Positions 2,701 through 34,595 of a stretch of DNA of 64,000 nucleotides are shown piece by piece. This DNA comes from Chlorokybus atmophyticus (lineage: Eukaryota; Plantae; Mesostigma and Chlorokybus algae). Numbering within the stretch: position 1 is the stretch's first letter; each line of letters opens with the position of its first letter. The translations under genes were made by a program, and so were the position numbers. The stretch covers positions 1-64,000 of the forward strand of contig RHPI01000773.1 of assembly GCA_009103225.1 (NCBI GenBank). Reading direction: 5' to 3'. The notes below the pieces were generated by a model. That model did not search any database. It saw only the letters and a program-made list of their open reading frames with translations, and was not told the origin of the DNA.

Positions 2701-3751
2701 GACATGAGTTTGACGCAGGCCCTAACACTATGACTATAGTTTGTAGCTTGCCACAAATCCTGGCCAGCAACTTCACTGGGACATGGCGCCTATCGCCAAA
2801 AGCACGCTGCAGATCTTTGAGACCATCTCTCTTCTTGCCGGGAACACGTACCACGCCAGCGTGTGTATCCCACACAAAGCCCAGGAATACAATCACCCGA
2901 CTGAGCACCGGTTGCGCCTTGGCATTGTTCACCAAACCGCACCATGCTGCATCTGCTTTTGCCATGGCTAGGGTGGAGGCATGCGCAGCCTTGGAGCGAG
3001 CAGCAAACAAGAAATTATCAATGTATGGCAGGACGCGGATGCTTTGTATACGCCAACGGCGCACCAATTGTTTCATCACCTTGGTGATTACGAAGCAAGC
3101 TGTGCTCAACCCAAACGGCAACGAGCAAAAGTTGTACACTTTGCCCGCAAATGAGAACCCCAAGTAGCCGCAGAAGGCGGGGTGTATGTCTACATATTGG
3201 TTTCCGGACTTCAAGTCCGTGGAGAACAACCAGTCCATGGGCTGCAGCAAGTCTGGAATGCTGCGCACATCCTCATACTTGAACGGCGTGTTCACCAAGT
3301 TGGAGTTGACATAGCGCAACTTCATGATGAGGCGCAGCTTGCGGCCATCATTGACCACGTTGAGTGGGCTCACCACGAGGGGGGGTGTCACACACTCTTG
3401 TGCGGCCCCACTATGCACTAGGTTGGCGATGGCAGCCGCAGTGAAGTCCGCAAACTCATGCACACCCTTGTGGTTGGTGAATGCCCATTCGGGGGGTGGA
3501 TCAGTCGCCCATGATAGCTTGTACCCGTACTCCACCCACAAAAGCACCATGGTAGACTCACAAAATTGCTGCCATGGTGGCAGGGCCCCCCGTAAGCGGT
3601 GCCTCATGTATGGGCCTTCTACCACCAAATTGCTAGGTGCTCGTGCAAACTCCTGGTGTTTCATGTAGTCCTCCACCAACTCCGACTTAATTGAAGTGTA
3701 GTCAAGTGCCACCGTGCACGCTGCCGCCGTAACTGGACCCCGTATGTGCAA
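2681..3751 (-). CDS. DIRS reverse transcriptase (catalytic motif degenerate)
   Basis: SPLNVV..GRKLRLIMKLRYVN, DLKSGNQYVDI, LPFGLSTAC, RVLPYIDNFL (YxDD changed to YIDN), FLGFVWDT. Confidence 0.9.
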   Translation of the reverse strand: MHIRGPVTAAACTVALDYTSIKSELVEDYMKHQEFARAPSNLVVEGPYMRHRLRGALPPWQQFCESTMVLLWVEYGYKLSWATDPPPEWAFTNHKGVHEFADFTAAAIANLVHSGAAQECVTPPLVVSPLNVVNDGRKLRLIMKLRYVNSNLVNTPFKYEDVRSIPDLLQPMDWLFSTDLKSGNQYVDIHPAFCGYLGFSFAGKVYNFCSLPFGLSTACFVITKVMKQLVRRWRIQSIRVLPYIDNFLFAARSKAAHASTLAMAKADAAWCGLVNNAKAQPVLSRVIVFLGFVWDTHAGVVRVPGKKRDGLKDLQRAFGDRRHVPVKLLARICGKLQTIVIVLGPASNSCLGIHAA

Positions 3752-15196: not shown

Positions 15197-16059
15197 CATA
15201 TAGCATTAATGCGTTAACGTGACAGGAACAACACCTCCGTGTAGTGACAAAATGCCTCCACATTCGTGGTCACTCTATGAGGGGAGACTAGGCCTATGCG
15301 CTGCGATGGCAGCAACTAACATTGTGAAAAGACACTTTACTGCACGCTTGAGCCGCCATTCCATCCTATCAGTCTCGACGCCAGAGACCATTGTTGGGGC
15401 AGACCTTAAACCGGTTGGATCATCGCTGTTCCCGCTGCATAACGTTGTGTTACTGCGATGGGATAAGATGGGAGTTGTGGTGTTACGTAGATTGACACCG
15501 TCGAAGTGGTTGTATTCGGCGCTTAGTTGGACGGTGCACGACGCGTGGTCTGCGCTGATTGATCAGTGTCGGCATGCTTTTGGTTCAGTCGGCTTACTGT
15601 TGTCGATCAGGCTTTGACGGACGTGGAACAGTTGAGGGTAATGGTGCGTAAACGGGGAAGTGGGCTGCTTAAACTCATGCATATCGTTTTGGTCAGTGGT
15701 TTAGCGCGGTTGCAAGTGGGTGTGGCGTTGGACGTATATCGGCTTGTAGTGAAACGCTGCGTGGATATCGCGTGGTTGTTGTGTGTGGGTTATGGGCGGG
15801 TCGGTGTTGCTGCTGCGGCGGCAGCTGTGTTGGTGTTGTGCGTATCATGGCGGCTCGTGTAGACGACGATGACCATGTGCCGTAAAGTGTTTCATTGTCG
15901 CTTGGTGGTCCGTTGCCATATATTTAGTGGAGCGCCTCGTTATACCAAGCTGGATATGAGCAGGTGGGCGCACTAGTTATGTGGGCATGTGTTAGACATA
16001 TGCGGTGTGTGTATAATGTTGCCGGCATTTGTTGGAATATTGTGTCGTGCGGTCGTCAG

Positions 16060-19000
16060 GTGCCGCTGGGATGTCCAGCCCTAATCACAGGCTCCATGTC
16101 TGCTTCTGGTGATGGCGTCAGGGAGCTGCATGTTGAGCTGCCTGGTGGGTTTGGGTTTAGATACAGTTTGCATCGTGTGCGGCAAGAGGGAGGCATGCAA
16201 TTGCGATTAAGCAGTGACCGGCTAGTTATGGAGCATGTTGTGGGTGGGGTTGTGCTCGCTCAGTAGGTGATTGCTACCACTAGTGATATGAAGCCCGGGA
16301 GGCGAAGACATTGGGTGGAGCAGTGGCATGACACTGAATGGCTATCATTTGAAGTGGGGCAGTGGAGCCTGCATCCTCTGCAAAGCGGCGACAACGGTTA
16401 TGGCGACAATCTGGGGTTGCCCCACCCACCCCCTGTAGTGGAGGGGGGTGGTTGGCAGCCAGTCATGCCTCTCGGATCAGGTGAGCAGTCACCTTTCACA
16501 CGCGTGTCGCATTTATGCGCAATGGGTTGATGCAGTCCCTGTTCATGTCCATTGTTGTGTGCATGCCAACTGTCGTGACGCTATGATCTGTGCGCATCTT
16601 CGTGTCCGATCATGCGTTGCATTACTGGACTGCTTTGTTGTGTGCATGCTAACGCAAGCGTTGATTGTTTTTGTGCTGCAGTGGTGTCACAGTCCCGAGA
16701 CCCAGCCGATGGTGGATAGAGCAATTGCTGGGTGCGTCTTATAGGTTGACACCTGCTGCCCACACATTCTGCTATTTGAGTCTAGCGCTTATGTGCAGAC
16801 AATGCGTGTGCATAGGCAGAGTTTATTTGATTGCAACGATACCGTGCTGCATGCTGTTGATGCATGTCGATTGTGCAAGCCGAAGTAGATCTCACTGACG
16901 ACAGATCAGGTGGGGTGTGGAGACTGTCAGATCCTGCCAGGCCCGTAGCATGATGCAGTTTTGAGCGATTGATAGTTGTTGATGGCTCGCTGACCGCAAC
17001 ACCCTTATGCGCAGACAATGCGTGTGCATAGGCAGAGTTTATCTGATTGCAATAATACCGTGCTTGCATGCTGGTGATGCATGTGAATTATGCAAGCCGA
17101 AGTGGATCTTACTGACGTCAGACCAGGTGGGGTGTGGAGACTGTCGGATCCTGCCAGGCCCGTAGCATGATGCAATTACAGCGACTGACAGTTGTTGATG
17201 GCTCGCTGACAGCAACACCCTTATGCGCAGACAATGCGTGTGCATAAGCAGAGTTTATCTGATTGCAGCGATACCGTGCTCGCATGCTGTTGATGCATGT
17301 GAATTGTGCAAGTCGAAGTAGATCTTAATGACGACAAACCAGGTGGGGAGACTGTTGAATCCTGCCAGGCTCATAGTGTGATGCAGTTTTGAGCAACTGA
17401 TAGTTGTTGATGGCTCGCTGACTGCGACACCCTTCTGTATAGCTGTGATGGATGTCTGTTTCATATTATTTGCGAGACCGCCAAACAGGCTGTGTATGTT
17501 TTCTCTGTGTGTGCGAGATGCGGTCAGCGTTTGACCTTTGCAAGCACAGGTGTACCAGTTGTTGCAGCATTATAGACATGCCACGACAGCTAATGTGCGC
17601 AGCTGATGACAAACTGAGAACTTTTCACTCTATCTGGTTGTCTTGGGCTGAATTGACAGCGGCTCTATCATGCAGAACTTAGGGTTTGGGAGGGTTGATG
17701 TTGTTGCTAGTGTGGGGGTGGTGCTGCATGGGAGGCGGAAGTGTGGGTGTGTTGGGGCGGCGTCGCTGCAGAGCTTGGTGTTGGTTGTGGTGGATCTGAT
17801 GTAGCGTTCACCGGTGAAGTTTTGCACACGGCGGACAGAGCGGGCGGCATGGCGGGCAGCAGCCGTCTGAGGCCAGACTTCCAGGGAGGGTTGGTTGGTC
17901 AGGCCGATGGCAACATCTGCGACGTTTTTAAAAGAAGGTATGCATGCAGTGTAAGTGCAATCCCAAAACCCTTATACAACTCCCTCCAGCGAATGTGATG
18001 TTCCCATGCATCCTGTCCCATAGTCCATGCAGTGTGTTAGGGATCATTGGCCTGTCCAGGTGATTAGTTGTGCTGTTGTTGTGTTGTTGACCAGGTTGCA
18101 GTATAAAATAAATTTGCTGCTCGCATGCATCCTGTGTTTGGTCCCATGAGTGTATGAGCGACACGTTGATCAGCATGGCAACTGCAGCAATTTGAACGCA
18201 TACATTGTTATCAGTATTGATGCTTTCATATGGAAGCGGCGTAGCCAATCGTGCTCAAGTTGTGACGTAAGGAATGGCATTCGTCATGCTCAAACGACAG
18301 GTCTGAGTTCACTGGTTGTTGCAATGAATGCCAGTGCATGCGTACAGCGTACGAATGCGAACTGAAGGCCAAGGATGTGGAGATGATGATGAAGATGCGC
18401 GCGCAGCTTCAGAATAAGGACAAACAGCACAAGGCCTTCGAGAAGCAAGTGATTAAGTGTCGCAGGCAGCAAATGACAGTGCCGTGTAATAGTATTGCTG
18501 GCCAATGAAAGACTGTGTACTGATGGGCATTGTGCCTGTTGGGCAGGTCACATGCCTAGTGCGGACAATTAAAGAGCTGAGGCGCAAGTTGGAGGTGCGA
18601 AAGGCGGCGCGCCAGGAGGAAATTAACAAGGTGACTAGTGCTGTAGTCTCATGGTCAGGGGTTGTGTGAAATAACGGTCAAGCTATACTTGTGTGCATGG
18701 CTCTGCTCTTCTTCTACGTATTCTGCCTTTCACTAGGTGTGAACATGGGCATTCATTGCCAAATGCAGGAATCATGCTTGTGGTGCCAGAACATGCATGT
18801 AGAGCGGTGCATTTGTTGTCACATGCGTATGTGACTCTGTTTGAATATGGGCCATCATTGCCAGATGCAGGTCCTTAAGGACAAAAAGTCTAAGTACAAA
18901 GACCATTACAGGCGCAGCGAGAGCGTGATCTCTTAGTTGACCTGGAAGCTACATCTGGTTGTCAACAAAGCATACAGAGACATTGATGAAGCATCTGTCA

Positions 19001-19200
19001 GTGAGCAGAGTGACGCTGGCAAGGAAGAGTATGGCGCGTACAACGAAGCAGCTGTGCACATGGATGAGCCTTTTGAGGCGCCATCGTATACGTTGCATGG
19101 AGACTGAGTTGTGCCTGGCCACCGGCACACGTATGCAACAGGTGGCCATGTTGACATCTGTCCAATTTTGGTAGTGTTGCATGCCAGCCATGCCTGATGA
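16060..19200 (+). pseudogene. Decayed spliced cargo gene of unknown function with coiled-coil exons
   Basis: Exon 16060-16480 (AG/GT bounded, one in-frame TAG), then exon-like pieces ECELKAKDVEMMMKMRAQLQNKDKQHKAFEKQ, LVRTIKELRRKLEVRKAARQEEINK|gt, ag|VLKDKKSKYKDHYRR. Confidence 0.45.
16788..17434. repeat. Three tandem copies of a ~216-bp unit
   Basis: Units start CTTATG(T/C)GCAGACAATGCGTGTGCATA at 16788, 17004 and 17220. Confidence 0.9.
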
Positions 19201-19301
19201 ACAGTGTCTGCTGAAATAGCATATGTATAACTCATTGCTGAATAACTGTGTGATGAACTCTTAGCATGTGTACAACGCTGGATTCGCAGTCGGACTCATG
19301 T

Positions 19302-20473
19302 CTATGGTATGGTAGTAAAGGTGACTGGTAGCTGCCTGGCACTACCTTGCAAGACCTTAGGCTGACCATGACAAGGGGCCGCTGCCGAGTGTGTATCCTT
19401 CAAATTAAACATCTGCCTGCCTATGTACTCAGAATACGCAGGTGGGATGCACTCGACTAGTGTGGGCTCTGCTTGTATCCAACGAATGCATGATGCCTGC
19501 TGCCAACCGGTGAGTGTACCACGGGATGCTGCTCTGCCATATGCCGGGAACATTTGTAGCGTTGCCTGCCCTGCGTTGGACGCTCCATTGCTGCCTCTAT
19601 GGCCAGACAAGTTGCCTAGGCTTTTCGACTTGTGGTCACATACAAGATCTGCGTCGAGGATTGGATTTGTTTCATAGATTCTGTGTCAGAACGTAGGCAG
19701 CCCAAACATCGTTCCACACAGCACCATGTTGGTCTCCATGTGAACAGCAGCGAATGGTACATTCTCCATTATGTACGGTGTCCCACAAGCTTGCAGTCAA
19801 CTGAGCAGGTTGGGTAGGAGAGTGCTGTGCTGCCAATGGGCATCATGGGTTGTGCGTTGCGCCTCAGGTATGCATGTCACATATGCTTGGCATGGTGGAC
19901 TAGCCCAAATCAAGTCGTAGCCGGTAAGATCGTGTGTCATGGCATCACCTTGCATGAATGGAAATGGATACTCCGGTTGTGCATTGGTGTCCATGCCAGT
20001 AACGTTAAAGCCAGCGCGGTAAAGTCCCATGCTGGCTGCACCACCGCAGCAACAAAGGTCCAGCGCCCTTGGTCAATGTGGTACACCGTCACCACGGATG
20101 TGAGTATGTGTGAAAAGGAGTGGTGTTGAGTCGGTCCACAATGGTAGGGAGGGCAATGGTGGGGTGGCCTTGCGATGTTGCTATACACGTTGTCCTCCAA
20201 GCAGTATGCAACACAACCTGCCATTGTGCGTGAAAGTGACGGCCACACTGTGCAATGCCAGCTTTAAGTGCTGCACATCGTCATCCTCACAGCGGACGGA
20301 GTGGCGGCCTGCCAAAGACGGCATGTCAGTGACTGCAGGGAACATGGGTGGTATGACAGGTACGACAACAACTATGTGGTCTCACCGCTGTCAGTGCTGT
20401 ACGCGTAAATGGCGCCACTGTACCAACTCGAATCCGCTGGCCGGTATACCATGACAGCACTGCCAATCAACGC
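19302..20473 (-). pseudogene. 3-prime part of cargo gene: Tudor domain plus phage/bacterial-type C5-cytosine DNA methyltransferase
   Basis: Exon 20473-20386, GT-AG intron 20385-20309, exon 20308-19302. Tudor: LIGSAVMVYRPADSSWYSGAIYAYSTDSG/RHSVRCEDDDVQHLKL. MTase: [67 protein letters not shown]. Four in-frame stops, no frameshift. Confidence 0.85.
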
Positions 20474-21114
20474 GACATGTAACGATGCTCGTGCTCACAT
20501 ACACAGCACACAAGTCATACAACACATGTGTGCAGCTGAGCACAATCTTCACACCGGAACCTTGCCTTCACTCGCGCACGCACGCACGCGTCGAGCGCGC
20601 ACACGCACACGAACACTACTACTTCTCACGCCAAGCAAGAACGCAGCAGTGTGCCTTGGACCACAACTCCCTCAAGCATGCACCAGCATACTCACAGCAG
20701 AGAGCAGAAAACAAAGTTGGTTGCATTACACAGGGTTTTTCTATCTATACAAGCACTAGGAAGAAATAGCCTAATTAACAGGCATTTCATTATTCACTAC
20801 CAAATCTAAAGGCAGGTCCAAGTGCAGGCTCCCCGCCACGCGCGTTGGGCCTTCGGCGGCTGTGTGACTGTGCAGTCCGCGTCACCTGGCACTGCACAGC
20901 GCGTGTCCAGTCAGCGGCTGTGTCACAACCGCGTGGCAGGTGGGTCACGTCGCCGAATTAGCTGCTGTCGAGCAGGTCGCAGGCGAGTCGCGCGCGGCAG
21001 CAGGGGCAGGCGCCACATGGGCTTAATAAAGCTCATAAAAGCCCTCATCAAGCCAGCAAAAAAGGCAAAATAAGTACTTTATGTACAATAAAATACAAAA
21101 AATGCCCCAGGCTG

Positions 21115-24100
21115 TTACACCTCTTCCCCCCCGGGGAAGCTTCGTCCTCGAAGCTGACGACTGCCTCCTCTGGCCTTGTAGTCTTGCAAGACCTGTTTGG
21201 CATTGGTAAAGCTCTCCTCGGGCTCGTATGTCGCCTCGTGCATTGGATAGCCACGCCACTTCACCAAATACTTGCGCACGCCTCGGATCAGCTTGTCCGT
21301 GACAATTGCTTCCACTTCCCACTCAGCCTCACCTTCACGAACCACATCTGGAGGCGGACGAGCTGGTGGCTCCCCTCGATAACCTTTAAGAAGCGAGACA
21401 TGAAAAACAGGGTGCACATGCATGGTATTGGGCAGCTCCAGCTTGTAGGCCACCTTCGAGATGACCTTGATCACTTTAAAGGGCCCAAACCATCGCTCAC
21501 TCAGCTTGCGCACCCCCGTGACCAGCTGCACATGCTTGGTTGAAAGCATTACAAGGTCACCCTCCTCGAACACAACATCCTTGCGACGCGCATCGGCGTA
21601 TTGCTTTTGCCGGTTTTGCGCCACAAGCAGAGCCTCTCGAGCTGCCTTGGTAATGTCGGCACACCTTTCAAGAAAGCCGTCCACGGCCTCCACATCTGAA
21701 CTTTGCATGCTAGGCACCCACGCCGTCAATGGCGTCAATGGATGTTGCCCATAGTTCATAAGGAAAGGTGTCACGCCCGTGCTTGCACTCTTGTGGTTGT
21801 TAATGGTGAACTCAATCAGCTCCAGCATGTCTCCCCAATTGTCTTGGCGGCTGTTCACATAGCACCGTAGCATGTCTTCGATGACGCGGTTGGCGCGCTC
21901 CGTTTGGCCGTCCGTTTCAGGGTGGTACGCGGTGCTGAACTTCAAGCTCGTGCATAGAGTTGCGTGGAGAGCTCTCCAGAAGTTGCCAGTAAACCGCGGG
22001 TCTCTGTCACTGATAATGCTTCTTGGAAGGCCATGAGAGCGCACCACATGCTTGATGAACAACTTGGCAGCCTCGGGAGCTGTGCAAGTCTCCGTACATG
22101 GCGCCAATCGCACCATTTTGCTAGTCTTGTCCACAAACACCAAGATAGCATCATGCCCTTCACGTGTCCGTGGCAGCCCCGTGATGAAGTCAAGAGTAAC
22201 TTGCTCCCACTTCGTCAAAGGTATCGGCAATGGTTGGAGCAGCCCACTGGCGCGTTGATTGCTCGCCTTCACCCTTTGACAAGTGTCGCACAATGCCACA
22301 TAGTCCTTAACGTCACGATGCATCTCCGACCAGAAAAATTTCTGTTTCAACAAGGCTAGTGTCCGTTCCAGCCCTTGATGACCAGCCATTGGCACATCAT
22401 GCGCTTCCTTCATCAATGCCACGCGCATGTGCGCAATGTTGGGTATGTACATGCGATCGCCATGCCATAGCAGCCCGTCCTTCAATGCCCAAAGGCCGCT
22501 ATGTTCAGTCCCATTCTCCAACGCCTCAATGGTCTTCTCCCCCACCGCGTCCTCATGCAATAAGGCACGGATCTGGTCAAGCCACTTGGGCTGCACTTGC
22601 ACCACCGTTTCAAGCGCGTTGAGTTGACGGCTTAATGCGTCCGCAACCTTATTTGAAGAGCCCGGCTTGTACTTCACTTCAAAGTCGAAGAGTTGGAAGA
22701 ACTCGAGCCAACGAGCTTGCCGCCGTGAGAGGTGAGGCTGCGTTTGAAGGTACCTTAATGGCGAGTGGTCCGTCTCAAGTGTGAACCGCTTGCCTTCAAG
22801 GAAACAACGCCATTGCCGTAGCGCTAGCACCTGCGCCAGCAATTCCTTCTCATGAACAGGGTAGTTGAGCTCAGCCCCGCTCATCTTCTTGCTGAAATAG
22901 GCCACTGGTTGCAAGCCGTTGCCGTGATCCTGCTGCAAAACAGCCCCAATAGCCTTGTCGGACGCATCACACGCCACCACAAAGGGCAATTGCATGTTGG
23001 GATGCAGCAGCACGGGAGCCGATGTCAGGGCCTCTTTCAAGTCGGAAAATGCCTTTGTTGCAGCCTCCGACCAGCTCCAAGCCACCCCCTTCCTCAACAA
23101 TGCCGTCAATGGTGCCGCCAAGTGCGAAAAGCCCTTTACAAACTTACGATAGTAGCCGGCAAGCCCTAGGAACGACATGACACCCTTCACGTCCTTCGGG
23201 GCAGCCCAATCGCGCACCGCGGCAAGCTTGCTTGGATCTGCCTTGATTCCTTGCTTGGATACAATGTGGCCAAGGTATTCTACCTCTTCAAGCAAGAAGC
23301 GGCACTTGTTGAGCTGAGCAAACAACTTGTGTGTACGTAAACGCTGCATCACCTCGTGTAGCAATGCCACGTGCTCTCTCTTGCTCTTTGTGTACACAAG
23401 GATGTCGTCGAGGTACACTAGCACGCCCTTGCCAATCAGATCAGCAAAGACCTCATTCATCAAGGTTTGAAAGGTTGCCGGAGCATTTGTCATGCCAAAG
23501 GACATCACCAACCACTCATAGTGGCCATAGCGAGTGTTGAAAGCCGTCTTCTCAACGTCTTCGGGCGCAACACGAATCTGATAGTAGCCACCAGCTAGGT
23601 CCAAGCTTGAGAAGAACTCAGCACCCTCGAGCTGCTCCAACAACTCATCAATGCGTGGCAAAGGGAACACATTCTTTTTGGTGATGTTGTTGAGTGGCCG
23701 ATAGTCGATGCACATGCGCAAGGCTCCGCTCTTCTTACGTACAAATAGGATAGGTGCACCGTAAGGAGACTTGCTGTGCCTGATGTACCCACGTTGTAGA
23801 AGGTCCTCGACTTGGCTCCTCGCCTCTTCGAGTTCAGCCGGAGACAACTTGTACACCGGTCGGTACGGCGGCTTGTGCACGCCCTCTATCAGTTCCACAC
23901 GGTGATCAACACTTCGCGTGGGTGGCAGACCAGCTGGTAGCCCATCCACCATGACGTCTTTGAACTCTTCAAGCAACCTCTGCACCTCGGGGTCCTTCGA
24001 ACTCTCCGAACCAGTGCCGACCAGCTCCAAGTCCGACTTGGGAGGTGTCTCACGCACCATGCACAGCCATGCATCCTTCACATTGTTCCCGGACCAGATC

Positions 24101-24801
24101 TGCTCCATCTTGGTCTTAGAAACTTGTGACACCAGCTCTGGAACCCCTCCCCTTGAGCTAGAAGCATGTTGTGGTGCAGCTTGCTGGCGCGCCGTCGTGT
24201 CGTGCGCGTCACGCGCATGCAGCACATTGCTAGCAGCCTCGACGCAGCTCACACGCTCTTGAACCACACACGCGCCTTGCATTGAAGCATTGAAGCACAT
24301 CAAAACCTCACCACCAGCTTCCGGGGTAGTGAGCACCCGCTTCCTCCAATCAATGGCGGGGTTATGTGACCAAAGCCAAGGCAGCCCCAAAATGCCATCA
24401 AAGCCGTTGTTCAGCTCGATGCAGCAAAACCGTAGGCGATCCTTCATCATCCCCACGTGCATTTCAAGCTCTTTGCTTTGCTTGGAAGCTCCTCCTGCTG
24501 GCGCATAGCCGTCCGCTAGAGCCACCGAGCCGGCATTTGCCCATGACAACCACTTGTGCCGACGCGCAACCTCACGACTCATGAAATTGCTGTTCGCGCC
24601 GCAATCCACCAGCATCTTGCACTCCATCCATGGCCCATTGCCCTCACGGATCAGAGCCATGACTCCCAACAGCTGCCTCGCCTTGTCGGGCACTCGAACC
24701 ATACCGCTTTGCGTTGCCGTTGCGCACATGCCGCCAACCGTCAACAACGCTTCCACGCCAGCCGCTGGACATTCAACATCATAGTGAGGCTGCATCACCA
24801 C
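21115..24801 (-). CDS. pol: Gypsy Pol: protease, RT, RNase H, integrase, chromodomain (probably translated as gag-pol by -1 frameshift)
   Basis: LVDCGANSNF, YLDD, DASDKAIG, HHCC and DDE integrase, GPFKV, WEVEAIV..YLVKWRGY. Confidence 0.97.
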   Translation of the reverse strand: MVMQPHYDVECPAAGVEALLTVGGMCATATQSGMVRVPDKARQLLGVMALIREGNGPWMECKMLVDCGANSNFMSREVARRHKWLSWANAGSVALADGYAPAGGASKQSKELEMHVGMMKDRLRFCCIELNNGFDGILGLPWLWSHNPAIDWRKRVLTTPEAGGEVLMCFNASMQGACVVQERVSCVEAASNVLHARDAHDTTARQQAAPQHASSSRGGVPELVSQVSKTKMEQIWSGNNVKDAWLCMVRETPPKSDLELVGTGSESSKDPEVQRLLEEFKDVMVDGLPAGLPPTRSVDHRVELIEGVHKPPYRPVYKLSPAELEEARSQVEDLLQRGYIRHSKSPYGAPILFVRKKSGALRMCIDYRPLNNITKKNVFPLPRIDELLEQLEGAEFFSSLDLAGGYYQIRVAPEDVEKTAFNTRYGHYEWLVMSFGMTNAPATFQTLMNEVFADLIGKGVLVYLDDILVYTKSKREHVALLHEVMQRLRTHKLFAQLNKCRFLLEEVEYLGHIVSKQGIKADPSKLAAVRDWAAPKDVKGVMSFLGLAGYYRKFVKGFSHLAAPLTALLRKGVAWSWSEAATKAFSDLKEALTSAPVLLHPNMQLPFVVACDASDKAIGAVLQQDHGNGLQPVAYFSKKMSGAELNYPVHEKELLAQVLALRQWRCFLEGKRFTLETDHSPLRYLQTQPHLSRRQARWLEFFQLFDFEVKYKPGSSNKVADALSRQLNALETVVQVQPKWLDQIRALLHEDAVGEKTIEALENGTEHSGLWALKDGLLWHGDRMYIPNIAHMRVALMKEAHDVPMAGHQGLERTLALLKQKFFWSEMHRDVKDYVALCDTCQRVKASNQRASGLLQPLPIPLTKWEQVTLDFITGLPRTREGHDAILVFVDKTSKMVRLAPCTETCTAPEAAKLFIKHVVRSHGLPRSIISDRDPRFTGNFWRALHATLCTSLKFSTAYHPETDGQTERANRVIEDMLRCYVNSRQDNWGDMLELIEFTINNHKSASTGVTPFLMNYGQHPLTPLTAWVPSMQSSDVEAVDGFLERCADITKAAREALLVAQNRQKQYADARRKDVVFEEGDLVMLSTKHVQLVTGVRKLSERWFGPFKVIKVISKVAYKLELPNTMHVHPVFHVSLLKGYRGEPPARPPPDVVREGEAEWEVEAIVTDKLIRGVRKYLVKWRGYPMHEATYEPEESFTNAKQVLQDYKARGGSRQLRGRSFPGGEEV

Positions 24802-24843
24802 CTCAGCAGGAGCCTCTCCAGCTACTGAGGTGAGCCGTTTCCC
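24795..24843 (-). promoter_or_regulatory. -1 programmed ribosomal frameshift signal
   Basis: Slippery G GGA AAC (24843-24837) in the gag frame, followed 4 nt later by stem CACCTCAGTAG..CTGCTGAGGTG. The -1 frame is open into pol. Confidence 0.7.
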
Positions 24844-25868
24844 GGCTGCAACATCTCCTCCTCCACCATGTTCACGCGTCCACCGCTGCGAGCGTTGCGG
24901 GCATGTGCAGCAGACTTTGCCTTATAGATAGGGCAGTTGGAGCGCACGTGATCAGCAGAAGAGCACTCCCAGCACTTCCGAACAGCCTTGGCAGCCTCCC
25001 GACCCTTTGGGGCCTTCATAGCAACATGGAGCGCACCCAATTCCATTGGAGTTGGTCCCAAGCCAGCCCCCTGAGTTGCTGCAGCTCCCGAACCAGCCCC
25101 AACAGATGCGTATGAGCGATACGAACCTCCACGGAAGTGATTGTAATGTCCACGATCAGTGTTTTTGGCAGCCCCCTTGAAGTACAACACGTCCGTGCGC
25201 TCAGCAATGCGAATGGCCTCCGCGAGAGTCTTGGCGTCACGAAGCTCAACTTCCTTGCGACAAAGAGTCTTCAACCCGCGCGTGTAGCGGTCCAGCTGCT
25301 CCTCCTCAGTCATGTTCGGTACAGAGAGCACAAGACGCTGAAACGCAGAGGTATAGGCCATCACGGACTGCGTTTGCACAAGCGTAGAGAGCTGGTCGCG
25401 TGCCGTCTTCACACTCTCCACCGGTACGAACTGTTTCTTCACCTCAGCAGCCAGCTCAGCCACGGTAGTGAAAGGAACCTCAAGACCAGCTTCCACACGA
25501 GCACAACGATGACGCCACCACACAAGTGCAGCTCCCTCAAAGAAAGTAGCAGCCACATCGACACGGAGATGTATAGGTACCTCGGTGAGCTTTAACCATG
25601 TCGAAACGGCAAACACCCATTCCTCCACACAGTCACCGTCCCTCTGACCCTTGAATGGCTTTGGTTTTGGTAGCTTCACATGACGAGAGGCTGATGGGGC
25701 AACCACAGGAGCTGTAACGGGCGTGGACGCGCGCGCTTGCGCCATGGCTTGTTGAAATTGTGCCGCTTGAGCTTGGGCAGATGCTTGGACACGTTGCAGC
25801 TCCTCATGAGCAGCTACCAGCACTTGCTGAAGCTCCACAACACGTGCATCATCCATGGTAGCGTCCAT
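24822..25868 (-). CDS. gag: Gypsy Gag with zinc knuckle
   Basis: 348-aa ORF, retrotransposon gag motifs, GPTPMELG, CWECSSADHVRSNC. Confidence 0.95.
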   Translation of the reverse strand: MDATMDDARVVELQQVLVAAHEELQRVQASAQAQAAQFQQAMAQARASTPVTAPVVAPSASRHVKLPKPKPFKGQRDGDCVEEWVFAVSTWLKLTEVPIHLRVDVAATFFEGAALVWWRHRCARVEAGLEVPFTTVAELAAEVKKQFVPVESVKTARDQLSTLVQTQSVMAYTSAFQRLVLSVPNMTEEEQLDRYTRGLKTLCRKEVELRDAKTLAEAIRIAERTDVLYFKGAAKNTDRGHYNHFRGGSYRSYASVGAGSGAAATQGAGLGPTPMELGALHVAMKAPKGREAAKAVRKCWECSSADHVRSNCPIYKAKSAAHARNARSGGRVNMVEEEMLQPGNGSPQ

Positions 25869-26596
25869 AAACAGAAAAATACCTCACACACCAAAGAGAT
25901 AGTTAATATCCCCTTAAAACAAGAAACCCAACCCCTCCAAGGGCTCCGATACCACTGTAACGATGCTCGTGCTCACATACACAGCACACAAGTCATACAA
26001 CACATGTGTGCAGCTGAGCACAATCTTCACACCGGAACCTTGCCTTCACTCGCGCACGCACGCACGCGTCGAGCGCGCCCACGCACACGAACACTACTAC
26101 TTCTCACGCCAAGCAAGAACGCAGCAGTGTGCCTTGGACCACAACTCCCTCAAGCATGCACCAGCATACTCACAGCAGAGAGCAGAAAACAAAGTTGGTT
26201 GCATTACACAGGGTTTTCTATTTATATAAGCACTAGGAAGAAATAGCCTAATTAACAGGCATTTCATTATTCACTACCACATCTAAAGGCAGGTCCAAGT
26301 GCAGGCTCCCCGCCACGCGCGTTGGGCCTTCGACGGCTGTGTGACTGTGCAGTCCGCGTCACCTGGCACTGCACAGCGCGTGTCCAGTCAGCGGCTGTGT
26401 CACAACCGCGTGGCAGGTGGGTCACGTCGCCGAATTAGCTGCTGTCGAGCAGGTCGCAGGCGAGTCGCGCGCGGCAGCAGGGGCAGGCGCCACATGGGCT
26501 TAATAAAGCTCATAAAAGCCCTCATCAAGCCAGCAAAAAAGGCAAAATAAGTACTTTATGTACAATAAAATACAAAAAATGCCCCAGGCTGTTACA

Positions 26597-27230
26597 CCAC
26601 CCTCATTGCGACGGCGGCGGTGCGTTGCAAGGGTGTCCAATATGCCGACAGTCATTGATGTGGTCTGGGAATGCTCAATGTTGCCGACTTGCATAGCGTA
26701 CGTTCCACGTCCGCAGCGTGGTAGTTGGCATGGCTGCGCATTGCTCTCTCTCGGCGCAGGACATTGTGCATAGCTGTTGTTGCCTCTCATATCTTGATCT
26801 TGTCGGCGGTTAGGTGCCTGCGGCGAGAGACTGGGACGCAAGTATGGCATATACCGCATGGGTTGCCCATTCCATTTGAAGGCAGAGCACTGACAGGCAT
26901 TGCAGGTGCACTCTGATATGAAGAACTTTCATTTTTGCAGCGATAAATGGCTCTGCAGTCAAGGATGTGTTGCCCCGCGGCGTGGTGGTGCCAACATGCT
27001 GCGGTGAAGCCGAATCGCTGGTGGTAAGCCTGGCATTGGGATTGGTGTCGGGATAGACGAGAACGCTGACCGTTGCTAACGATGTATGCATGGCAGACGG
27101 TGCATGTGAGTGTTGGCGCCATTGGAGGATGGGACCACACAGTGCACGGTCTAGAATTGAACAGCGTCCTTGCGACATCAGGCGGTGAGCCGCCTCTCCG
27201 ATTGCTGAACCATAATAAATCGAGGTACAT
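26597..27230 (-). pseudogene. 5-prime part of cargo gene: Cys/His zinc-finger-like region
   Basis: MAPTLTCTVCH..RLSRHQSQC (ATG 27122) and PCGICH..RRRHL. The frame continues through two TGA codons to the Gypsy edge and joins the Tudor exon if a 5-bp TSD is removed. Confidence 0.55.
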
Positions 27231-27281
27231 CCTTATTTTGTGAGTCCAACGTATCGGTCCATCACATGCTTTCAGACGCAG

Positions 27282-30200
27282 TCAAATGCCATCCTTGTCC
27301 ATGTTGGTGAGGTCTTCCACGTCGCTGTCGCTGTCGCTGTCATCAGAGTCGTCAAAGTCCCAGTCTATGTCCACATCCACATGTGCAAAAACTGGTGCGG
27401 CAGTCATTGGCATGGCACTTGCGCATGGTGCAGCGTCTTGTGCACCGGATGGCTCCCGGGGGCTGTGGTTGTCACAGCCCGAACAGCTACAGCTGTCGGT
27501 GCATGCTTGTCCTGCTTTCCTTGCATTTGCAATTTTTGCTGATGCATCCGCTAGTCTTGCAACCACAGCCTTTCATCAGCATCCGCCTCCTGCTCTTGGA
27601 AATGCATGTTCTCCGGGAGATCTTGAACTGCAGTCCACACACCGTCCACTTCCTCAAAACCATACTCAGCCAGGTCAGGGAGGTGCATTTCCGCCTCACA
27701 GCTTTGCATCCACATTTGCACGGCATATACCGCACGCAATGCATGCAGCCATAGCGCATCCACTGTGGGCATCGTTTCCCTTGGTGTTGCAGCTTCTTCC
27801 ACACTGTTTTGTGGATGGCTTCCAACCAGTTGCCCAAGTATACCTTATTACTTGTTGTGGCGTCAGGTCCATGGAGCTCGTAGAATAAGGATGCTGGCGT
27901 GCCGCTGTCAAATGTCAAATGAACTGGGATACTTCTCGTAATATATACAGCCCAGCAGGCGCAGCACTGCAAAGCACATCTCATGCGCCACATTTACTTA
28001 TGTCGCCAGTAATGAAGTTGGCGTGCTGAGCCATGACAGTCCGCCATATGAACTGCTTGGAGATCCCAACAATGAATGAAGTGTAGTCGCTGCCCGTGGC
28101 AGCATATACAAGCAGCAGCCACCATCCCCTGCGGCCAACGCGCATGCTGGCGACTTGATGCATGCAGCTGACATGTTCCCGCAAGGTGTTTGAGTTGATG
28201 AATGGTGGACGAGTGGACCCACAGGAGTGCTGGGCCACCTGCACACATACCTCCTTCAGAGACGTATCCCAGCTCTCAGTCACCGCCACACCGATCATCG
28301 TAACATCCGTATCCGGTGACTATATGAGGATGTTGTTGTCGGGTGCGCAGTGGGCATGCACCCACTGCGCAGGAGTCTGCCTCGCCATGGTTGCAGCTAT
28401 AATCTGCCACAAAGTAGACAGATACTTGGTTGTCGTTGTTGCGTGCAACAACTTTTGCGAGGTCATCAAACTCAGTACTGTCAGCACCTTCAGCGAAAAT
28501 AGCCTCCTGGTCTGTCCGCAAATGATCCTGAAGCATGGCTAGCATGTGCTCCGTAATAAGTTCACATAGTGAACGCTTGAGATTGCGGGCCTTTAACACA
28601 TCACGCCATGATCGCAGCAGCTCTGTATCCAGAGTCAGCCTGCCTCCTGACGAGGAAGCCACGCCGTCGCGCGAGCGCTGCAATGACGACTTGACGCCAC
28701 TCTGCAGCCAAGGAGTATCGAACACCACATGGACGCTGCGCACAGCTAAGTTGGCCAAATGGCTGAGGACCGAGGTACGCATGAGCTGCACTATGTAATC
28801 CTTGATTGTTCCTTCTGTCATGTGGCATTCCTTATTTATTGGAAACATGCCCTCTAGGATGACGCAGTCAACCCCTGGTGGAGAAGTCCGGCTCCAGCAC
28901 GGTGCATCGAGTGATGCAACTTCCGACAGGAAGTTGGACTTGTCTGCGGACCACATCTTGCTTGTCAACTCTTCAAAGAGAGCTTTAGGGTGTTCACAAA
29001 ATTTGGCTATGACTGCAGATTTGTCAGCGCCGATTGCTGCTAGACGCTTGGCCACCAGCATTTTCTGTCGATACTGTTTGAGCACTGTCGCTTGATTAGT
29101 AATGCGTTGCTTTGCTGGCGCCATTGTCTTCAAGTTGAATCGCCAACTAACTTTGTACAGAGCTTTGGGCTTCTCTGCAAATCTCAACTTCCACAAAGGA
29201 CTTCATTGACTCACTACCGACTTAATAGTGGCGATCAGCCGAAGCAGCTGGCGTTGCAGGCGCCCCTGAGGTAAAGTGAATCAGCTGTAATTGGTGAGGG
29301 CGGGCCAACGCTTGAGTGTTCAGAAAAAGGTTTGCCATGTGCTGCAGATCGCTGCCGTACCTTGTCGCATCCTTGGCGAGGCTGCGCAGTACCCTCTCGT
29401 GGTCATCGTCAGCGTCATCGTCTAACTCGTTGTTGAGCAATGTGTTGCTCAGCAGCATCTGCTTCTGCAGCTGCTTGTGCGATTGGCTACGCTCGCCCAA
29501 ATACATTGATATATGTCGCAGCTGTTCCTGTGTAGGGCGGCAAATTGACATCTTCATATCTCTGTTGACCATGGACTCGTGAGCTTTGTTGAGTGCCACC
29601 ATGCGACCGGCAGCACCAGTGAGACTAAGTGCAAAGCCACCAGATGCCAGCATCTTGTGCAAGTCCCGAGGCATGACCTGCAAGTCCCCCAGATGCAGAG
29701 TCATAACCTATGGATAACGGTAGCGGTCCCACGCAAATGGCAGAGGACCAAGCCCCTTTTATGTGGCCATTCGCATGTGGCATATCTTCTGGCGCACAGA
29801 GCAAAAGACGCCGAGATAATTGAGCATGTCGCGATTGACGAAGTTCCACCACAACTGCCAAGTGTGGTCAGTCATTGCCTGTTATGCAAACCCATTGCGG
29901 AAGAATGTGGCAGACTTGCACGACATCACCCCATGCTCTTCTTGGTCAGCGCGACACGTGCTGAGCACTTCTTCGCTCGCACTCACCACCTACAGTTTGT
30001 ACATATGTCTGTACAGGGCCTCCCACACCTTGCACAGAAAGTTATGTGTCTTTTTCCGGTGTGAGCCATCCGCCAGATGGTTGCGCGCAGTAGATGCTGT
30101 AAATGCGGCTTCCAGTGACATCGCATCAAGTCCAGCGTCCCCTGCCATCTTCACGAGCACTGGCTGCATGTTCATGAGGACATGGAAATCTCCCGGCAAG

Positions 30201-33200
30201 AGCGTAACCCAATCTCCGTATCCCGGCCCTGCCTTCTTGAGGGAATGCATCGACAAAAATGTATACTGGTCACCGGTCTCACATATCTTGCTGCTGTCAT
30301 CAATAATGCCCACCTTGTCACGCAGGTGGAGCAATGCGTGCTTGAGATTATCAATGTTGTGGGGCAAAATGGCAGGACTGGCAGGTTTTTTATGTCATTG
30401 GCCACTACTGTTGTCTCTCCAGTGGATATCTGCAAGTAATGAGCCTAATCCTCCTTCAGCGTGGGCAGCGCAGCTGGGTCCTCCCTGGTCATCCGCCATA
30501 GCACAGTGTTATGCATTATGCTCTAAAAAGACTCCAATGCGGACGTCTCTTCAGGTTTTGGGTGGAGTATGGGGTCGCTCCGAATAACACTCGGCGCACG
30601 CGATAACGGAGCCTGTTTCAACATTGGGTCCGCCGTTGGTTGTTGAACCATCGATTCTGCCAGAGTTCTGTTCTTCAATGGCTGCCATGGTAGCAAGCAC
30701 AGCGTCAGCAAAACATGCAGAAGACTACAGTGCTTGTGACACAGGTGATCTAGATAGTAATTGTCAATCTCTCACCTGCAGAATTAGCGGTGGGAGTGCA
30801 ACACGTCCCACTGTGGATGTGAGTTGAGTTGAGGTTGCGTGGATGTCTCCTCCCTGCCTGCCCTTGTAGCGTGCCTGGTGTCCTGCCCTAATGTCAAGGT
30901 TGTCTATGGACGGCAAGACGTGCATGCCTGGCTTGTGACGAATACGACTGACGAAATTGAGATTGTGCAGTGCACGAGTATGGATGTGTCGGTCAATATG
31001 ACTGCGACTAACAGACCCCCCCAGACGGTTGAGTGTTTGAATCAGCTTATTGCCTTGCAAGTGCATGTCCACCTCATCAGTGACCACCAAGTGTAATGGC
31101 GAGTATGCGAACTTGCTACGCGCATACAACGCTGTGTGCATAAGGAACAGTGTCTTATTACGGAGTATGGTGAGCGTTGATGCATGTCTCCGTCCAGGTG
31201 TTCTCAGTCGCTCCAAAGCATTGTATCAATTCAGGGCCCCGAAGACTGTGCGCAGCTGCTCGCCCGAGGCATCCCACTCCTCCTTCCAGTCCACTGAACT
31301 CAGGTCAGGGTCCGACTTGTTGCGCTCAACCTGACGTTGCCGTTCATTCTTCATGAGCCGTGAGAGCGTACGCAGCACGCCATCTGGCAAAGTGTCCGCA
31401 TCAGGTACACTGGTGCCCGCATGCGTGGCCTGTGCACTGACAGGCACCTCGGTAACGCGTGTGCCATGACGCAGGAGGCATGACAGTGGGTCCGCTTAGG
31501 CGCCGATCATTAGAGTGCCCTGCTGCATGCCACCAGTCTCAACGACCACTGCACCTGGCAAGCGTTGATGAACAGCTCGCAACAGATAGCGCGCCGGCGT
31601 AATGCTGTACTTGGCAGCAATTGCCGTGAGGAAATTAACAGCATCTCTCTGCAAAAGTTGCTGCGCAACTTCCCGAACGGCACATGCCAACGGCTCCACG
31701 CAATCCTCAGTCGCCACACTAGTCACTTCTGCTTCAAAGAGCTGCCGCACCTCTTCAGCAACACGCGCATCGTGCTGTGTTTGTCGCACTGATGTGCTAG
31801 TGCATATTGTCTCCCTTACGCCGGCAATGACATCTTCCAACTCCACCAGCTTACTGCGGTACCCTTCCAGGTCCCTCTCAGCCTTGAGCCTGTGACGCCT
31901 TTCCCCGTTACCGACTTCTGCCTCCTCGCGCACCCTTGTCTCCAACACCTAAAGGGACACTGTCAGCAGAGTGCCCAATCGACCCAAGGACCGCCAGGTG
32001 CAACCACACATCGGTACAAGCAACACCTCAGCATGTTGTTGCAACTCATCTAACTCGTCCTCCTGTTGGCGTGCGCGTGCAGACTCCTCACACCGCCGCT
32101 GCTCCTCCAAAAGGTGACGGGCGATCTTGCTATGTGCTACCTGACACGACCATCCACAGCATGAGAGTGCAGTCCTACACCATAGAGACACCCCAGGTGG
32201 AGAGACTGCAGGAGGAGTCTTCATTCAGTGCTCACCTCACACTTTTTGCGCAATTGCTGAACCGCTTGCCTGGCGTCCAGCAATGCTTGGGACTGGCCTA
32301 TGCGTCCCACCAATCCCAGATCACGCATAGCCGCTCGCAACCCTTCAATCTCCACAGCTTGCTTGTCTGGCTCCTTGGACGCTTGGCTCAGCTGCGTTGT
32401 CAGCCTTTATACTTGCAGCCTGAGACACTGCGTGCCAACATACAACACAGACATGACACACTGAGCACACCCACGAACGGGGTGTTAGTAGTAGTAGGTA
32501 GATTAGGTAGAGTAGCCCGGTGGTGAACTACGTGGCAGTGTGAAATGTGAGTGGTATGATTGTGGGATGGTGATGGTCGTTGTGCATGAGCATATGCCAC
32601 GCGCATTGTATGTACATGCAGCATCCTGGCAACACCGTGATAGATGCTAGTGCATTTGGCCATGACCACAAACATGGACAGTGTATTGACCACTGCATTC
32701 CTCCAACCAATGCACAACTTATGCAACAGCATGATCGATGCTGCGATTGACTTGCCTACTCAAATCATGCAGTGTGTTGCACATATCCTCGCAGTATCAC
32801 ATAGCCATGCATCATGTACCTCCAATTGGCTGAACACACTTGTCTGCCTGTACGCCTTGTCTGCATGCACTCTTGCAGTCCCCATTGTATCTGAATGCAC
32901 AAGACCATGCGCATCAAAGCCGACACAGCCACCACAGGCTCTTCTTATTTGGTGTATTATTGCACATCATAGCACGCTAGCAGCGACCACTACCAGTCTT
33001 ACAGCCTTATCAGCACTACCACTGGCTAAGGTCTATTGTGCCAAGAAACCACTTCAACTCAACTGCCAAACCGCCCACCTGGCAGTGTCCCAAGTGGTGT
33101 CCTGGGCATCCTTGGCACGTTCTTAGCAGCAGCCACCATCCGCGACAGAGTTGGATGAATCCGCACACTTTTGCCATTACGGTCCACACGCGTGTTCGCG

Positions 33201-33824
33201 GACAATTGCTGATGCAATGCATGCGCAGATGGCACCTGCTGCTGCAGACTATGCTGATGCGACTTCTGCCTCTTGCGCAGCTGAGAAGAGCCCGGCGGAG
33301 TGTTCTCTTGAATCTCGAGAGTTTCATCCTCGGAGCCTGACTGTTCCAAGTCTTCTTCCTACAAGCACACAAGTATCAGCATGATCATGCATATACAATA
33401 AGCCTGCATGCACACACAGCGTCTGCACACCCTACCTGATCATAACCAGCTGGAGACAATGCAGCAAGTTGATCAGCCTCCTGCACATGCCATGTAATCA
33501 ACCACCTACACAAAGCACGCAGCCAGTTTCATAGCATATACCTACACTGACCCACTCACCTTCACCAGCACCAGGTCATCGCCCTCCCATCTTCAGGTCT
33601 TATTACACGTCAGCGCATACAAGAAGACACTAGTAGGGTTCAAACGGATCCTCGACAAACCACACTCTTCCTTCAAACTAGTTGACATTATATTTGTCTT
33701 CATCCCGCCGGCGCTTGGCATAATCACGCTGGTTATCATTGCGTAAAGTCCTCGCTACCTCTATAGCCTCCAACTTCCAACATTGCTCCTCATAAAGCAG
33801 TGCTACAGAGCCCTCATCCGCCAT
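27282..33824 (-). pseudogene. Academ transposase-XPG/FEN1-like nuclease-CXC (Cys-rich) gene, decayed
   Basis: SIDNLD, TGDQYT, LPGDFHVLMN, SLTG..G..VALNKAHE..NRD; XPG-like HVVFD, HGEAD, SPDTDV, TGSDYTS..GISK; C-terminal GCGCKTSGCISKNCKC / CTDSCSCSGCDN. Many stops and frameshifts; start approximate. Confidence 0.8.
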
Positions 33825-34595
33825 CACCGCCACCGCCGCCGCCGCCGCCACCGCCGTCACCACACAAACAACGACACTACATTCGTCCTGCATCAACACA
33901 CCCACCCCAATCCCCAAGTTTTAATTCAAACTCAACACCGTTGACAAACACCGATATACGCTGCCGATCAGCAATGTTGACGACCAACATTTCACGCGTA
34001 TCGATATCAGCAAGCGTGAGCGACATAGCCAATAAACGAAAATTGTCACCGCTCAATTGTGTCGAGACTGAGAACACTGCTGATTGACTACCGTTTTCGG
34101 TCGTCGACAGAGCTTGCAATACGCCGACAAACACAGGTGATCCTTGAACGAACACGCCTGCCGATCAGCCGCGATCATGGCAATACTACGTATCGAGAAG
34201 ACATCGCAGCCGTCCAGTTGCTGCAATCTGCCATACCATGAGGTCTCTGGCGTCGAGACTGCTATGTCCAGGGCGGACCGCCACGTGAGCAGATATGGAT
34301 GACAGCATGCGCTGGGGCCAGATGATGAGCTAGGGTTTGCTGGCGGCGGTGGCGGCGGGGAGGGTTGTCTCGTCATCGTCCGCAGGGGGACCATACGTCA
34401 CGCGCCACACTCCCTGCAGAGACTTCTCGAGGCCTCCGCCGCGACGCCCGGTAAGGCACAGGAGGCTTCTACAGCATACTGCGTGTGGGTACATTGACCA
34501 CATACACAATGTCACAGTGCAATTACGGTGTTTGGCAGCTGTCCTGGTGTGTCTGAGCTCCTTTGAGCTTGAGGAGGCACGCACAGCGCACTACA

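Follow-up and report, generated by a model that had tools for sequence, protein, structure and literature searches.

We analysed a 64,000-nucleotide stretch of the nuclear genome of the alga Chlorokybus atmophyticus (assembly GCA_009103225.1, contig RHPI01000773.1; the whole stretch is referred to as the window herein, and all positions are counted in it). Between positions 15370 and 34261 it contains a single DNA transposon, delimited by terminal inverted repeats (TIRs) and a target-site duplication (TSD). Within these ends, and both on the minus strand, lie a transposase gene and, close behind it, a gene for a C5 cytosine DNA methyltransferase that is interrupted by a retrotransposon. The features that define the element and its two genes are as follows.

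15366-15369: left copy of the TSD, CTAT, read directly and the same as 34262-34265
15370-15389, plus strand: left TIR, CAGTCTCGACGCCAGAGACC, complementary to the right end at 20 of 20 positions
19305-20067 (reading frame 20072-19305), minus strand: catalytic exon of a C5 cytosine DNA methyltransferase of the small phage/bacterial type, from phrog_363, tblastn and alignment
20476-20386 and 20308-20218, minus strand: two predicted Tudor-domain exons, from the splice model and a match to PDB 7de9_A
26597-27230, minus strand: putative Cys/His-rich upstream exons of the Tudor-methyltransferase gene, from three-frame translation
27282-33824, minus strand: multi-exon, decayed transposase gene with its stop codon, TGA, at 27282-27284, from Pfam, ESM-Atlas clusters and motifs
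29993-31225 (exons 31225-30767 and 30394-29993), minus strand: DUF6589-like DDE core of the transposase, from Pfam DUF6589 and ESM-Atlas
28717-28728, 28375-28386, 28305-28319 and 28083-28094, minus strand: FEN1/XPG-like motifs VVFD, GEAD, SPDTD and GSDY, respectively, from motif reading
about 27465-27573, minus strand: CXC domain broken by a frameshift, from two halves of the Pfam TCR/CXC profile
34242-34261, minus strand: right TIR, the reverse complement of the left TIR
34262-34265: right copy of the TSD, CTAT, read directly

Boundaries of the element

The original prediction placed perfect 20-bp TIRs and a CTAT duplication around one element, and this held: the terminal 20-mers are complementary at all 20 positions, CTAT adjoins both, and imperfect similarity between the ends continues out to approximately 36 bp. 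When up to three mismatches were allowed, the 20-mer had just these two matches in the window (0.01 expected by chance from shuffled sequences), and 0 of 100 shuffles gave two matches. Since the TIRs are perfect, both are flanked by CTAT and the chance expectation is only 0.01, these ends are confirmed as the bounds of an element that inserted by cut and paste and duplicated 4 bp of its target. Reconstruction of the empty site from the window left one CTAT. The span from TIR to TIR is 18.9 kb; as 6.1 kb of this is a nested Ty3/gypsy chromovirus, described below, the DNA transposon proper measures approximately 12.8 kb.

The TIR 20-mer was also found exactly in two GC-rich, likely bacterial metagenome contigs (L010, 4454-4473; L011, 655-674) that share no wider similarity with the element. 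These are chance matches, and the 20-mer by itself is therefore not diagnostic in very large collections. An exact search of viral contigs gave 0 matches.

The methyltransferase gene

Just downstream of the transposase and in the same orientation, a C5 methyltransferase gene had been predicted, and its catalytic domain is indeed present at 19305-20072. The exon reads ...WASPPCQ...YIMENVP...FGLPTF*HRIYETN...ECIPPAYSEYIG (the asterisk marks a stop codon) and contains, in order, the motifs DLCCCGG, PPCQ, ENV, (R)HR and IPPAY. Aligned with seven homologs, to which it is 38-45% identical, it keeps all the catalytic motifs, including motifs I (GxG), IV (PCQ), VI (ENV) and VIII (RxR). Its first 64 residues matched phrog_363, annotated as 'DNA methyltransferase', in PHROGs (E = 4.5e-15), and a tblastn search against phages returned 307 records, almost all of them actinophages (43% identity, E = 2e-15), with a further search using the C-terminal part giving 139 phage records (E down to 2e-7). 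Compared with the window by tblastn, the homologs gave a single colinear high-scoring segment pair from 20072 to approximately 19380 (E down to 4e-49). On the exon in the window itself, the Pfam DNA_methylase profile (PF00145) scored no better than E = 0.26, while the homologs P0006, P0018 and P0001 scored above its cut-off.

A HMMER scan of 1.84 billion representative sequences with the 64 residues gave 2682 matches, the best of which were proteins of 200-250 aa with 56-70% identity over the 64 residues. The best 150 of the 2682 were 78-453 aa long, mostly 200-250 aa, and none of those that were inspected among these 150 had eukaryotic accessory domains of the DNMT1, DNMT3 or CMT type. By these comparisons the enzyme does not appear closest to the eukaryotic DNMT1, DNMT3 or CMT types. 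Of the relatives that were looked up, one belongs to a Micromonospora cluster with the annotation 'DNA cytosine methyltransferase', and another is encoded on a contig of phage-like character. Eight viral contigs carry relatives with 58-73% identity, all of them plain small enzymes (0 of 8 with a Tudor domain); the C-terminal piece had no match in viral contigs. A 402-aa relative, P0034, is encoded on L001 (contig JAZHCL010411860.1 of GCA_044343095.1) amid many small co-oriented genes, including RusA, in a phage-like context.

The reading frame of the catalytic exon is interrupted by two in-frame TGA codons, at 19797-19799 and 19686-19688. Both fall in alignment columns occupied by Arg or Lys in the homologs, and the codon at 19686-19688 takes the place of the Arg that is invariant in the RHR motif. 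Both stops would be explained by CpG mutation of CGA to TGA, a typical trace of 5-methylcytosine (5mC) deamination. An intron of 84 nt at 19797-19880 was considered and rejected, as the homolog alignment shows this segment to be coding, with a nonsense codon in it. The methyltransferase of this copy is a pseudogene, and its open reading frame (ORF) cannot yield an enzyme.

The gene proved longer than the methyltransferase domain that had been predicted, with putative Tudor and Cys/His-rich exons ahead of the domain and the chromovirus splitting them. Two reading frames, VALIGSAVMVYRPADSSWYSGAIYAYSTDSG and RHSVRCEDDDVQHLKLALHSV, correspond to the Tudor exons, and removal of two predicted GT-AG introns, one of 77 nt (20385-20309) and one of 150 nt (20217-20068), would splice the two exons together and onto the catalytic exon in frame. 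The spliced 61-aa Tudor peptide matched PDB 7de9_A over 46 residues (E = 4.8e-4), in an alignment that spans the first splice junction and depends on the splice model. The Pfam profiles Tudor_KDM3B (E = 0.006) and PTM_DIR17_Tudor (E = 0.016) were both below their cut-offs on this peptide. PDB entry 7DE9 shows the PDS5C Tudor domain from Arabidopsis thaliana in complex with H3K4me1 (bioRxiv 10.1101/2022.05.28.493846). At the positions of the aromatic cage, the decayed copy keeps some residues (Y, W, Y) and has others changed (R, C); that this Tudor domain reads H3K4me1 is a guess by analogy, with only some aromatic positions shared with PDS5C.

Upstream, a Cys/His-rich frame at 26928-26599 continues in frame into the first Tudor exon across the junction with the chromovirus, which sits four codons ahead of the first Tudor strand. 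No family match for the Cys/His-rich exons was found in Pfam or further profile searches. As the candidate start codons are at 27230-27228 and 27122-27120, with a CTVCH...H....C pattern in the upstream ORF, the gene would begin 50-160 bp past the transposase stop. Together, these exons suggest a gene that is spliced to encode a Cys/His-Tudor-C5 methyltransferase fusion.

The transposase gene

The original prediction of a transposase gene with XPG and CXC parts was upheld for the multi-exon transposase ending at 27282-27284 and for the CXC domain, although the latter is broken and the XPG part is visible as motifs only. The two exons of the DDE core carry SIDNLD, GDQYT and PGDFH. In the ESM-Atlas, the named clusters nearest to either exon are DUF6589 (scores of 0.94-0.95); Pfam DUF6589 was weak, with E = 0.0055 for one of the exons, below the cut-off. 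Downstream of the core, VVFD, GEAD, SPDTD and GSDY follow one another in what we take to be the order of the FEN1/XPG acidic motifs. No XPG domain was detected in the transposase by Pfam (E up to 10) or by phmmer searches of the PDB, and the nearest named Atlas cluster for the nuclease region is XRN_N (0.77). The CXC domain was matched in two halves (profile positions 2-22 and 20-37 of 38; E = 0.0056 and 0.03) that lie in different frames on either side of approximately 27520, which indicates a 1-bp frameshift near this position. An in-frame TAG at 28320-28322 separates DNNILI from SPDTDV, with a further frame change just before it. We read the gene as a decayed DDE-nuclease-CXC transposase, the XPG nuclease being assigned from its motifs alone. 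With the methyltransferase, the Tudor exon and the transposase all damaged, this copy of the element is dead.

AcademX elements make 3-4-bp TSDs (Kojima 2020, cited in PMC10045372). The order DDE-nuclease-CXC and the 4-bp TSD fit this group, as do the resemblance of the core to DUF6589 and that of the nuclease motifs to FEN1/XPG, and the element is a probable member of AcademX. The label 'Academ-like' given to it by the original prediction agrees with its TIRs, TSD and Cys-rich domain and is plausible for the element as a whole. No literature linking DUF6589 to Academ was found.

A chromovirus nested in the methyltransferase gene

The largest ORFs between the TIRs belong to neither of these genes; they are the gag and pol of a Ty3/gypsy chromovirus that was overlooked in the first reading and that runs in the same direction as the transposase and methyltransferase genes.

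20478-26596, minus strand: Ty3/gypsy chromovirus, 6,119 bp, from Pfam domains and a pair of long terminal repeats (LTRs)
20478-21119 and 25956-26596, minus strand: chromovirus LTRs of 642 and 641 bp, approximately 99% identical, from direct-repeat alignment
21115-24801, minus strand: chromovirus pol, 1228 aa, an intact ORF with protease, reverse transcriptase, RNase H, integrase and chromodomain in this order, from Pfam
24822-25868, minus strand: chromovirus gag, 348 aa, an intact ORF, from Pfam (Retrotrans_gag, E = 4.8e-15)

Pol matched the Pfam families RVT_1 (E = 8.7e-37), RT_RNaseH_2 (E = 1.7e-35), Integrase_H2C2 (E = 1.2e-19), Chromo (E = 6.3e-11) and SH3_Tf2-1, with a weak match for the protease. 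The LTRs start with TGTAACG and end with GTTACA, a polypurine tract adjoins the 3' LTR, and the 5' LTR is followed by a primer binding site, presumably of the initiator-Met tRNA type. No clean 5-bp target duplication was found at the chromovirus, which is flanked by CGACA and CCACC. The chromovirus is young. In X1, a low-coverage run of unknown library type and the only sequencing run to cover part of the stretch, it is far more abundant than the element around it, with a contig depth of approximately 68 over the chromovirus LTR versus 2-4 over the remaining stretch. Run X1 comes from the same organism, with several of its contigs identical to the window.

The methyltransferase as cargo of the element

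In this copy, the methyltransferase is part of the element. Its gene lies within the TIRs and close behind the transposase, and approximately 3.9 kb more of element DNA follows before the left end. Only four inverted-repeat matches of 11-12 nt were found around it, within the range of shuffled sequences (mean 0.74, largest 5). We therefore rejected the idea that the gene belongs to a nested DNA element with its own termini, which the original prediction had named as a possible refutation. We also considered the methyltransferase as cargo of the LTR retrotransposon and rejected this, as the gene is not enclosed by the LTRs and has its upstream exons on the far side of the chromovirus.

For carriage of the methyltransferase in the wider family, run X1 gives indirect evidence. 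Contigs matching at 19696 and 19743 follow part of the methyltransferase and then diverge into unlike sequence. Their loose ends translate as IFRHRLFET and ILENIPDAA, compared with TF*HRIYET and YIMENVPFAA in the window, which shows that the organism has a second, diverged methyltransferase copy with Arg where the window has a stop. The window itself holds no second copy of the element. Searches for homologous proteins found no match to the 127-aa methyltransferase piece, to the transposase exon of 308 aa or to the DDE exon of 153 aa, and a metagenome scan with the 308-aa exon was likewise negative. Of the predicted transposon family with its own methylation machinery, what stands is a copy that encloses both a transposase and a C5 methyltransferase, although the genes of this copy are all disabled.

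Weighing the interpretation

We interpret the locus as an inactivated cut-and-paste DNA transposon of approximately 12.8 kb, best placed near AcademX, with co-oriented transposase and Tudor-C5 methyltransferase genes between its TIRs, which inserted at CTAT and was later hit by a chromovirus, and we give this reading a probability of roughly 0.7. Several points weigh against it. The chromovirus has no clean target duplication, so that the contiguity of its flanks rests solely on the in-frame junction and the matching outer TIRs and TSD. The copy is incapable of action: its methyltransferase has two nonsense codons, its Tudor exon contains a retrotransposon, and its transposase is damaged by a TAG and by what look like frameshifts. 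The XPG domain escaped sequence searches of Pfam and the PDB, and an alignment-free AlphaFold model of the region was unusable (predicted local distance difference test score of 39). Placement near AcademX is provisional, the link between DUF6589 and Academ being one that we propose. Carriage by the family rests on short contigs. Finally, the locus is in no run on record as RNA, the splicing being predicted from sequence alone.

A TE-rich window, with a nested chromovirus and a further reverse transcriptase at 2681-3751, and the chance occurrence of the exact 20-mer in two unrelated metagenome contigs could be taken to mean that the 20-mers and CTAT are paired by accident in a mosaic of unrelated repeats. 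This is hardly credible given the expectation of 0.01 matches in the window even at three mismatches, the shuffles, none of which gave two matches, and the identical flanking tetranucleotide, which contributes an additional factor of 1/256; moreover, the TIRs enclose a transposase gene, as expected of a transposon. More weight attaches to the view that the methyltransferase is a one-off or occasional passenger, a host or virus-derived Tudor-methyltransferase gene captured in the manner of Pack-type elements and one that the family neither required nor profited from, for only one copy was examined and its methyltransferase is a pseudogene. We nonetheless judge this unlikely, since the methyltransferase retains its full length and every catalytic motif with only two CpG-type nonsense changes, the layout is compact, with the gene 50-160 bp past the transposase stop, and a second, diverged copy with an intact Arg codon is present in the organism. 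That the methyltransferase is multi-copy in the organism would also fit a host or virus-derived Tudor-methyltransferase family, for example a silencing system, near which transposons insert, making the association one of neighbourhood and not of carriage. In this copy, however, the gene is enclosed by one pair of TIRs whose flanking 4-bp TSDs match, and the approximately 3.9 kb of element DNA beyond it is repeated in the organism, which makes simple neighbourhood quite improbable.

Comparison with known systems

Carriage of the methyltransferase by the transposon, as we read the locus, has partial parallels in several systems. The element resembles AcademX (Kojima 2020, cited in PMC10045372) in having TIRs, cut-and-paste transposition, a 4-bp TSD and a long protein in which a DDE core is followed by FEN1/XPG-like motifs and a cysteine-rich domain; it differs in its second gene, encoding the Tudor-C5 methyltransferase, its many introns and its location in an algal nuclear genome. 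Retrotransposons of the LINE, DIRS and LTR types that carry DNMTs have been described in Symbiodinium and Klebsormidium (de Mendoza et al. 2018, PMC5890265). They too are mobile elements of eukaryotic nuclear genomes that encode their own C5 methyltransferase; SymbioDIRS and the Klebsormidium elements have eukaryotic Dnmt3-type enzymes (PMC5890265), whereas here the element is a DNA transposon and its enzyme, predicted to be joined to a Tudor domain, is of the small phage/actinobacterial type.

The virus-borne transposons Mariner-1_OLpv and Mariner-2_PGv encode a methyltransferase, in Mariner-1_OLpv with a Cyt_C5_DNA_methylase domain (Bao and Jurka 2013, PMC3627910). They share with the element a methyltransferase beside the transposase of a DNA transposon, but they are Tc/mariner elements of giant-virus genomes in which the methyltransferase accompanies a restriction-type endonuclease, without a chromatin reader or introns (PMC3627910). 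Fungal DNA transposons with TET/JBP dioxygenases, and HarbingerS and MuDR elements with SET domains, are known from fungi and oomycetes (Kojima 2025, PMC12730594). These are likewise cut-and-paste elements with a cargo enzyme that acts on epigenetic marks; their cargo oxidises 5mC or methylates histones (PMC12730594), whereas the cargo here would write 5mC.

At the level of the proteins, the small actinobacteriophage methyltransferases (phrog_363; for example, Mycobacterium phage Pound gp111) are colinear with the catalytic domain, with approximately 220 aa, the motifs PPCQ, ENV, RHR and IPPAY and 38-45% identity. They stand alone, whereas here spliced Cys/His and Tudor exons would precede the domain. 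The Tudor domain of Arabidopsis PDS5C/RDM15 (PDB 7DE9) is the best solved match and shares a pattern of G-S-x-V, W/Y-Y-x-G and D-D-x-D; PDS5C itself is a cohesin cofactor. In the literature that was searched, of which coverage is incomplete, we found no report of a methyltransferase in Academ elements, in line with the original prediction, and none of a Tudor-fused methyltransferase in any nuclear DNA transposon. For DNA transposons as a whole the lack of precedent has to be qualified, given the published virus-borne Mariner with a C5 methyltransferase (PMC3627910). Such cargo is known for retrotransposons and virus-borne transposons, and we found no description of it for this kind of nuclear DNA transposon.

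Proposed mechanism and significance

The element would have inserted at a CTAT site and then been hit by the 6.1-kb chromovirus. In intact copies, the transposase would bind the TIRs, excise the element and, by cutting the target with a stagger of 4 bp, reinsert it elsewhere. The Tudor domain would dock the methyltransferase on chromatin marked by methyl-lysine, possibly H3K4me1 as for PDS5C, and the methyltransferase would write 5mC there. The resulting methylation could damp the activity of the element itself, make the element resemble host-methylated DNA or affect genes of the host.

A tentative extension, which we consider possible though on balance doubtful, is that cut-and-paste transposons in the nuclear genome of this alga have in common a mobile 'epigenetic writer' cassette, in which a Cys/His part and a PDS5C-type Tudor domain reading H3K4me1-like marks are joined to a C5 methyltransferase derived from a phage or bacterium, and that intact copies are active and place 5mC on marked chromatin. 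If this were true, DNA transposons would help to write the host methylome beside host enzymes and retrotransposons.

Cytosine methylation is normally a weapon of the host against transposons, and elements with their own methyltransferase reverse this relation. The documented cases are retrotransposons of dinoflagellates and a charophyte, and mariner elements within giant viruses. A case in a nuclear DNA transposon would extend the phenomenon to a new transposon class, and would show how an enzyme of prokaryotic or viral origin can become a spliced, chromatin-targeted eukaryotic gene. The Tudor-methyltransferase fusion also suggests a testable targeting rule, from reader to writer domain, and could be studied as a small reader-writer protein of natural origin. 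The decay of the copy and the unproven carriage in the family lessen the interest of the find. The copy is a fossil, and its worth lies in its precise bounds, with the two ends, the duplicated target site and the cargo all in place.

Left arm and flanking DNA

The part of the element beyond the methyltransferase gene consists of one feature.

15390-19304: left arm, 3' of the minus-strand genes, without a supported gene; Pfam on the ORFs of both strands gave nothing significant

The third, convergent gene of the original prediction was not borne out. Pfam searches of plus-strand ORFs in the left arm found no supported gene, and the sole solid third coding unit of the element is the nested chromovirus, on the minus strand. 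Short coiled-coil-like reading frames do occur on the plus strand at 18266-19104, one with a weak match to DUF4709 (E = 3.6e-4, below the cut-off). These frames are unsupported as a gene, and may be the source of the predicted one. An OTU protease in the left arm was also considered and rejected, as a motif search found none.

The non-coding left arm contains a 216-bp unit in three tandem copies at 16788-17434 (88% matches). Contigs of run X1 match the left arm at 16070-16247, 18582-18751 and 18859-19013 with approximately 90% identity, which indicates that the left arm is repeated within the organism.

CpG values are 0.62-0.74 in the element versus 0.78-0.84 in the TE-rich flanks. Depletion of CpG was considered as a mark of methylation of the element and set aside as not decisive, the element being just slightly under its flanks. 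Transposable elements are abundant in the window as a whole, and another reverse-transcriptase ORF lies outside the element at 2681-3751 on the minus strand (RVT_1, E = 2.3e-9).

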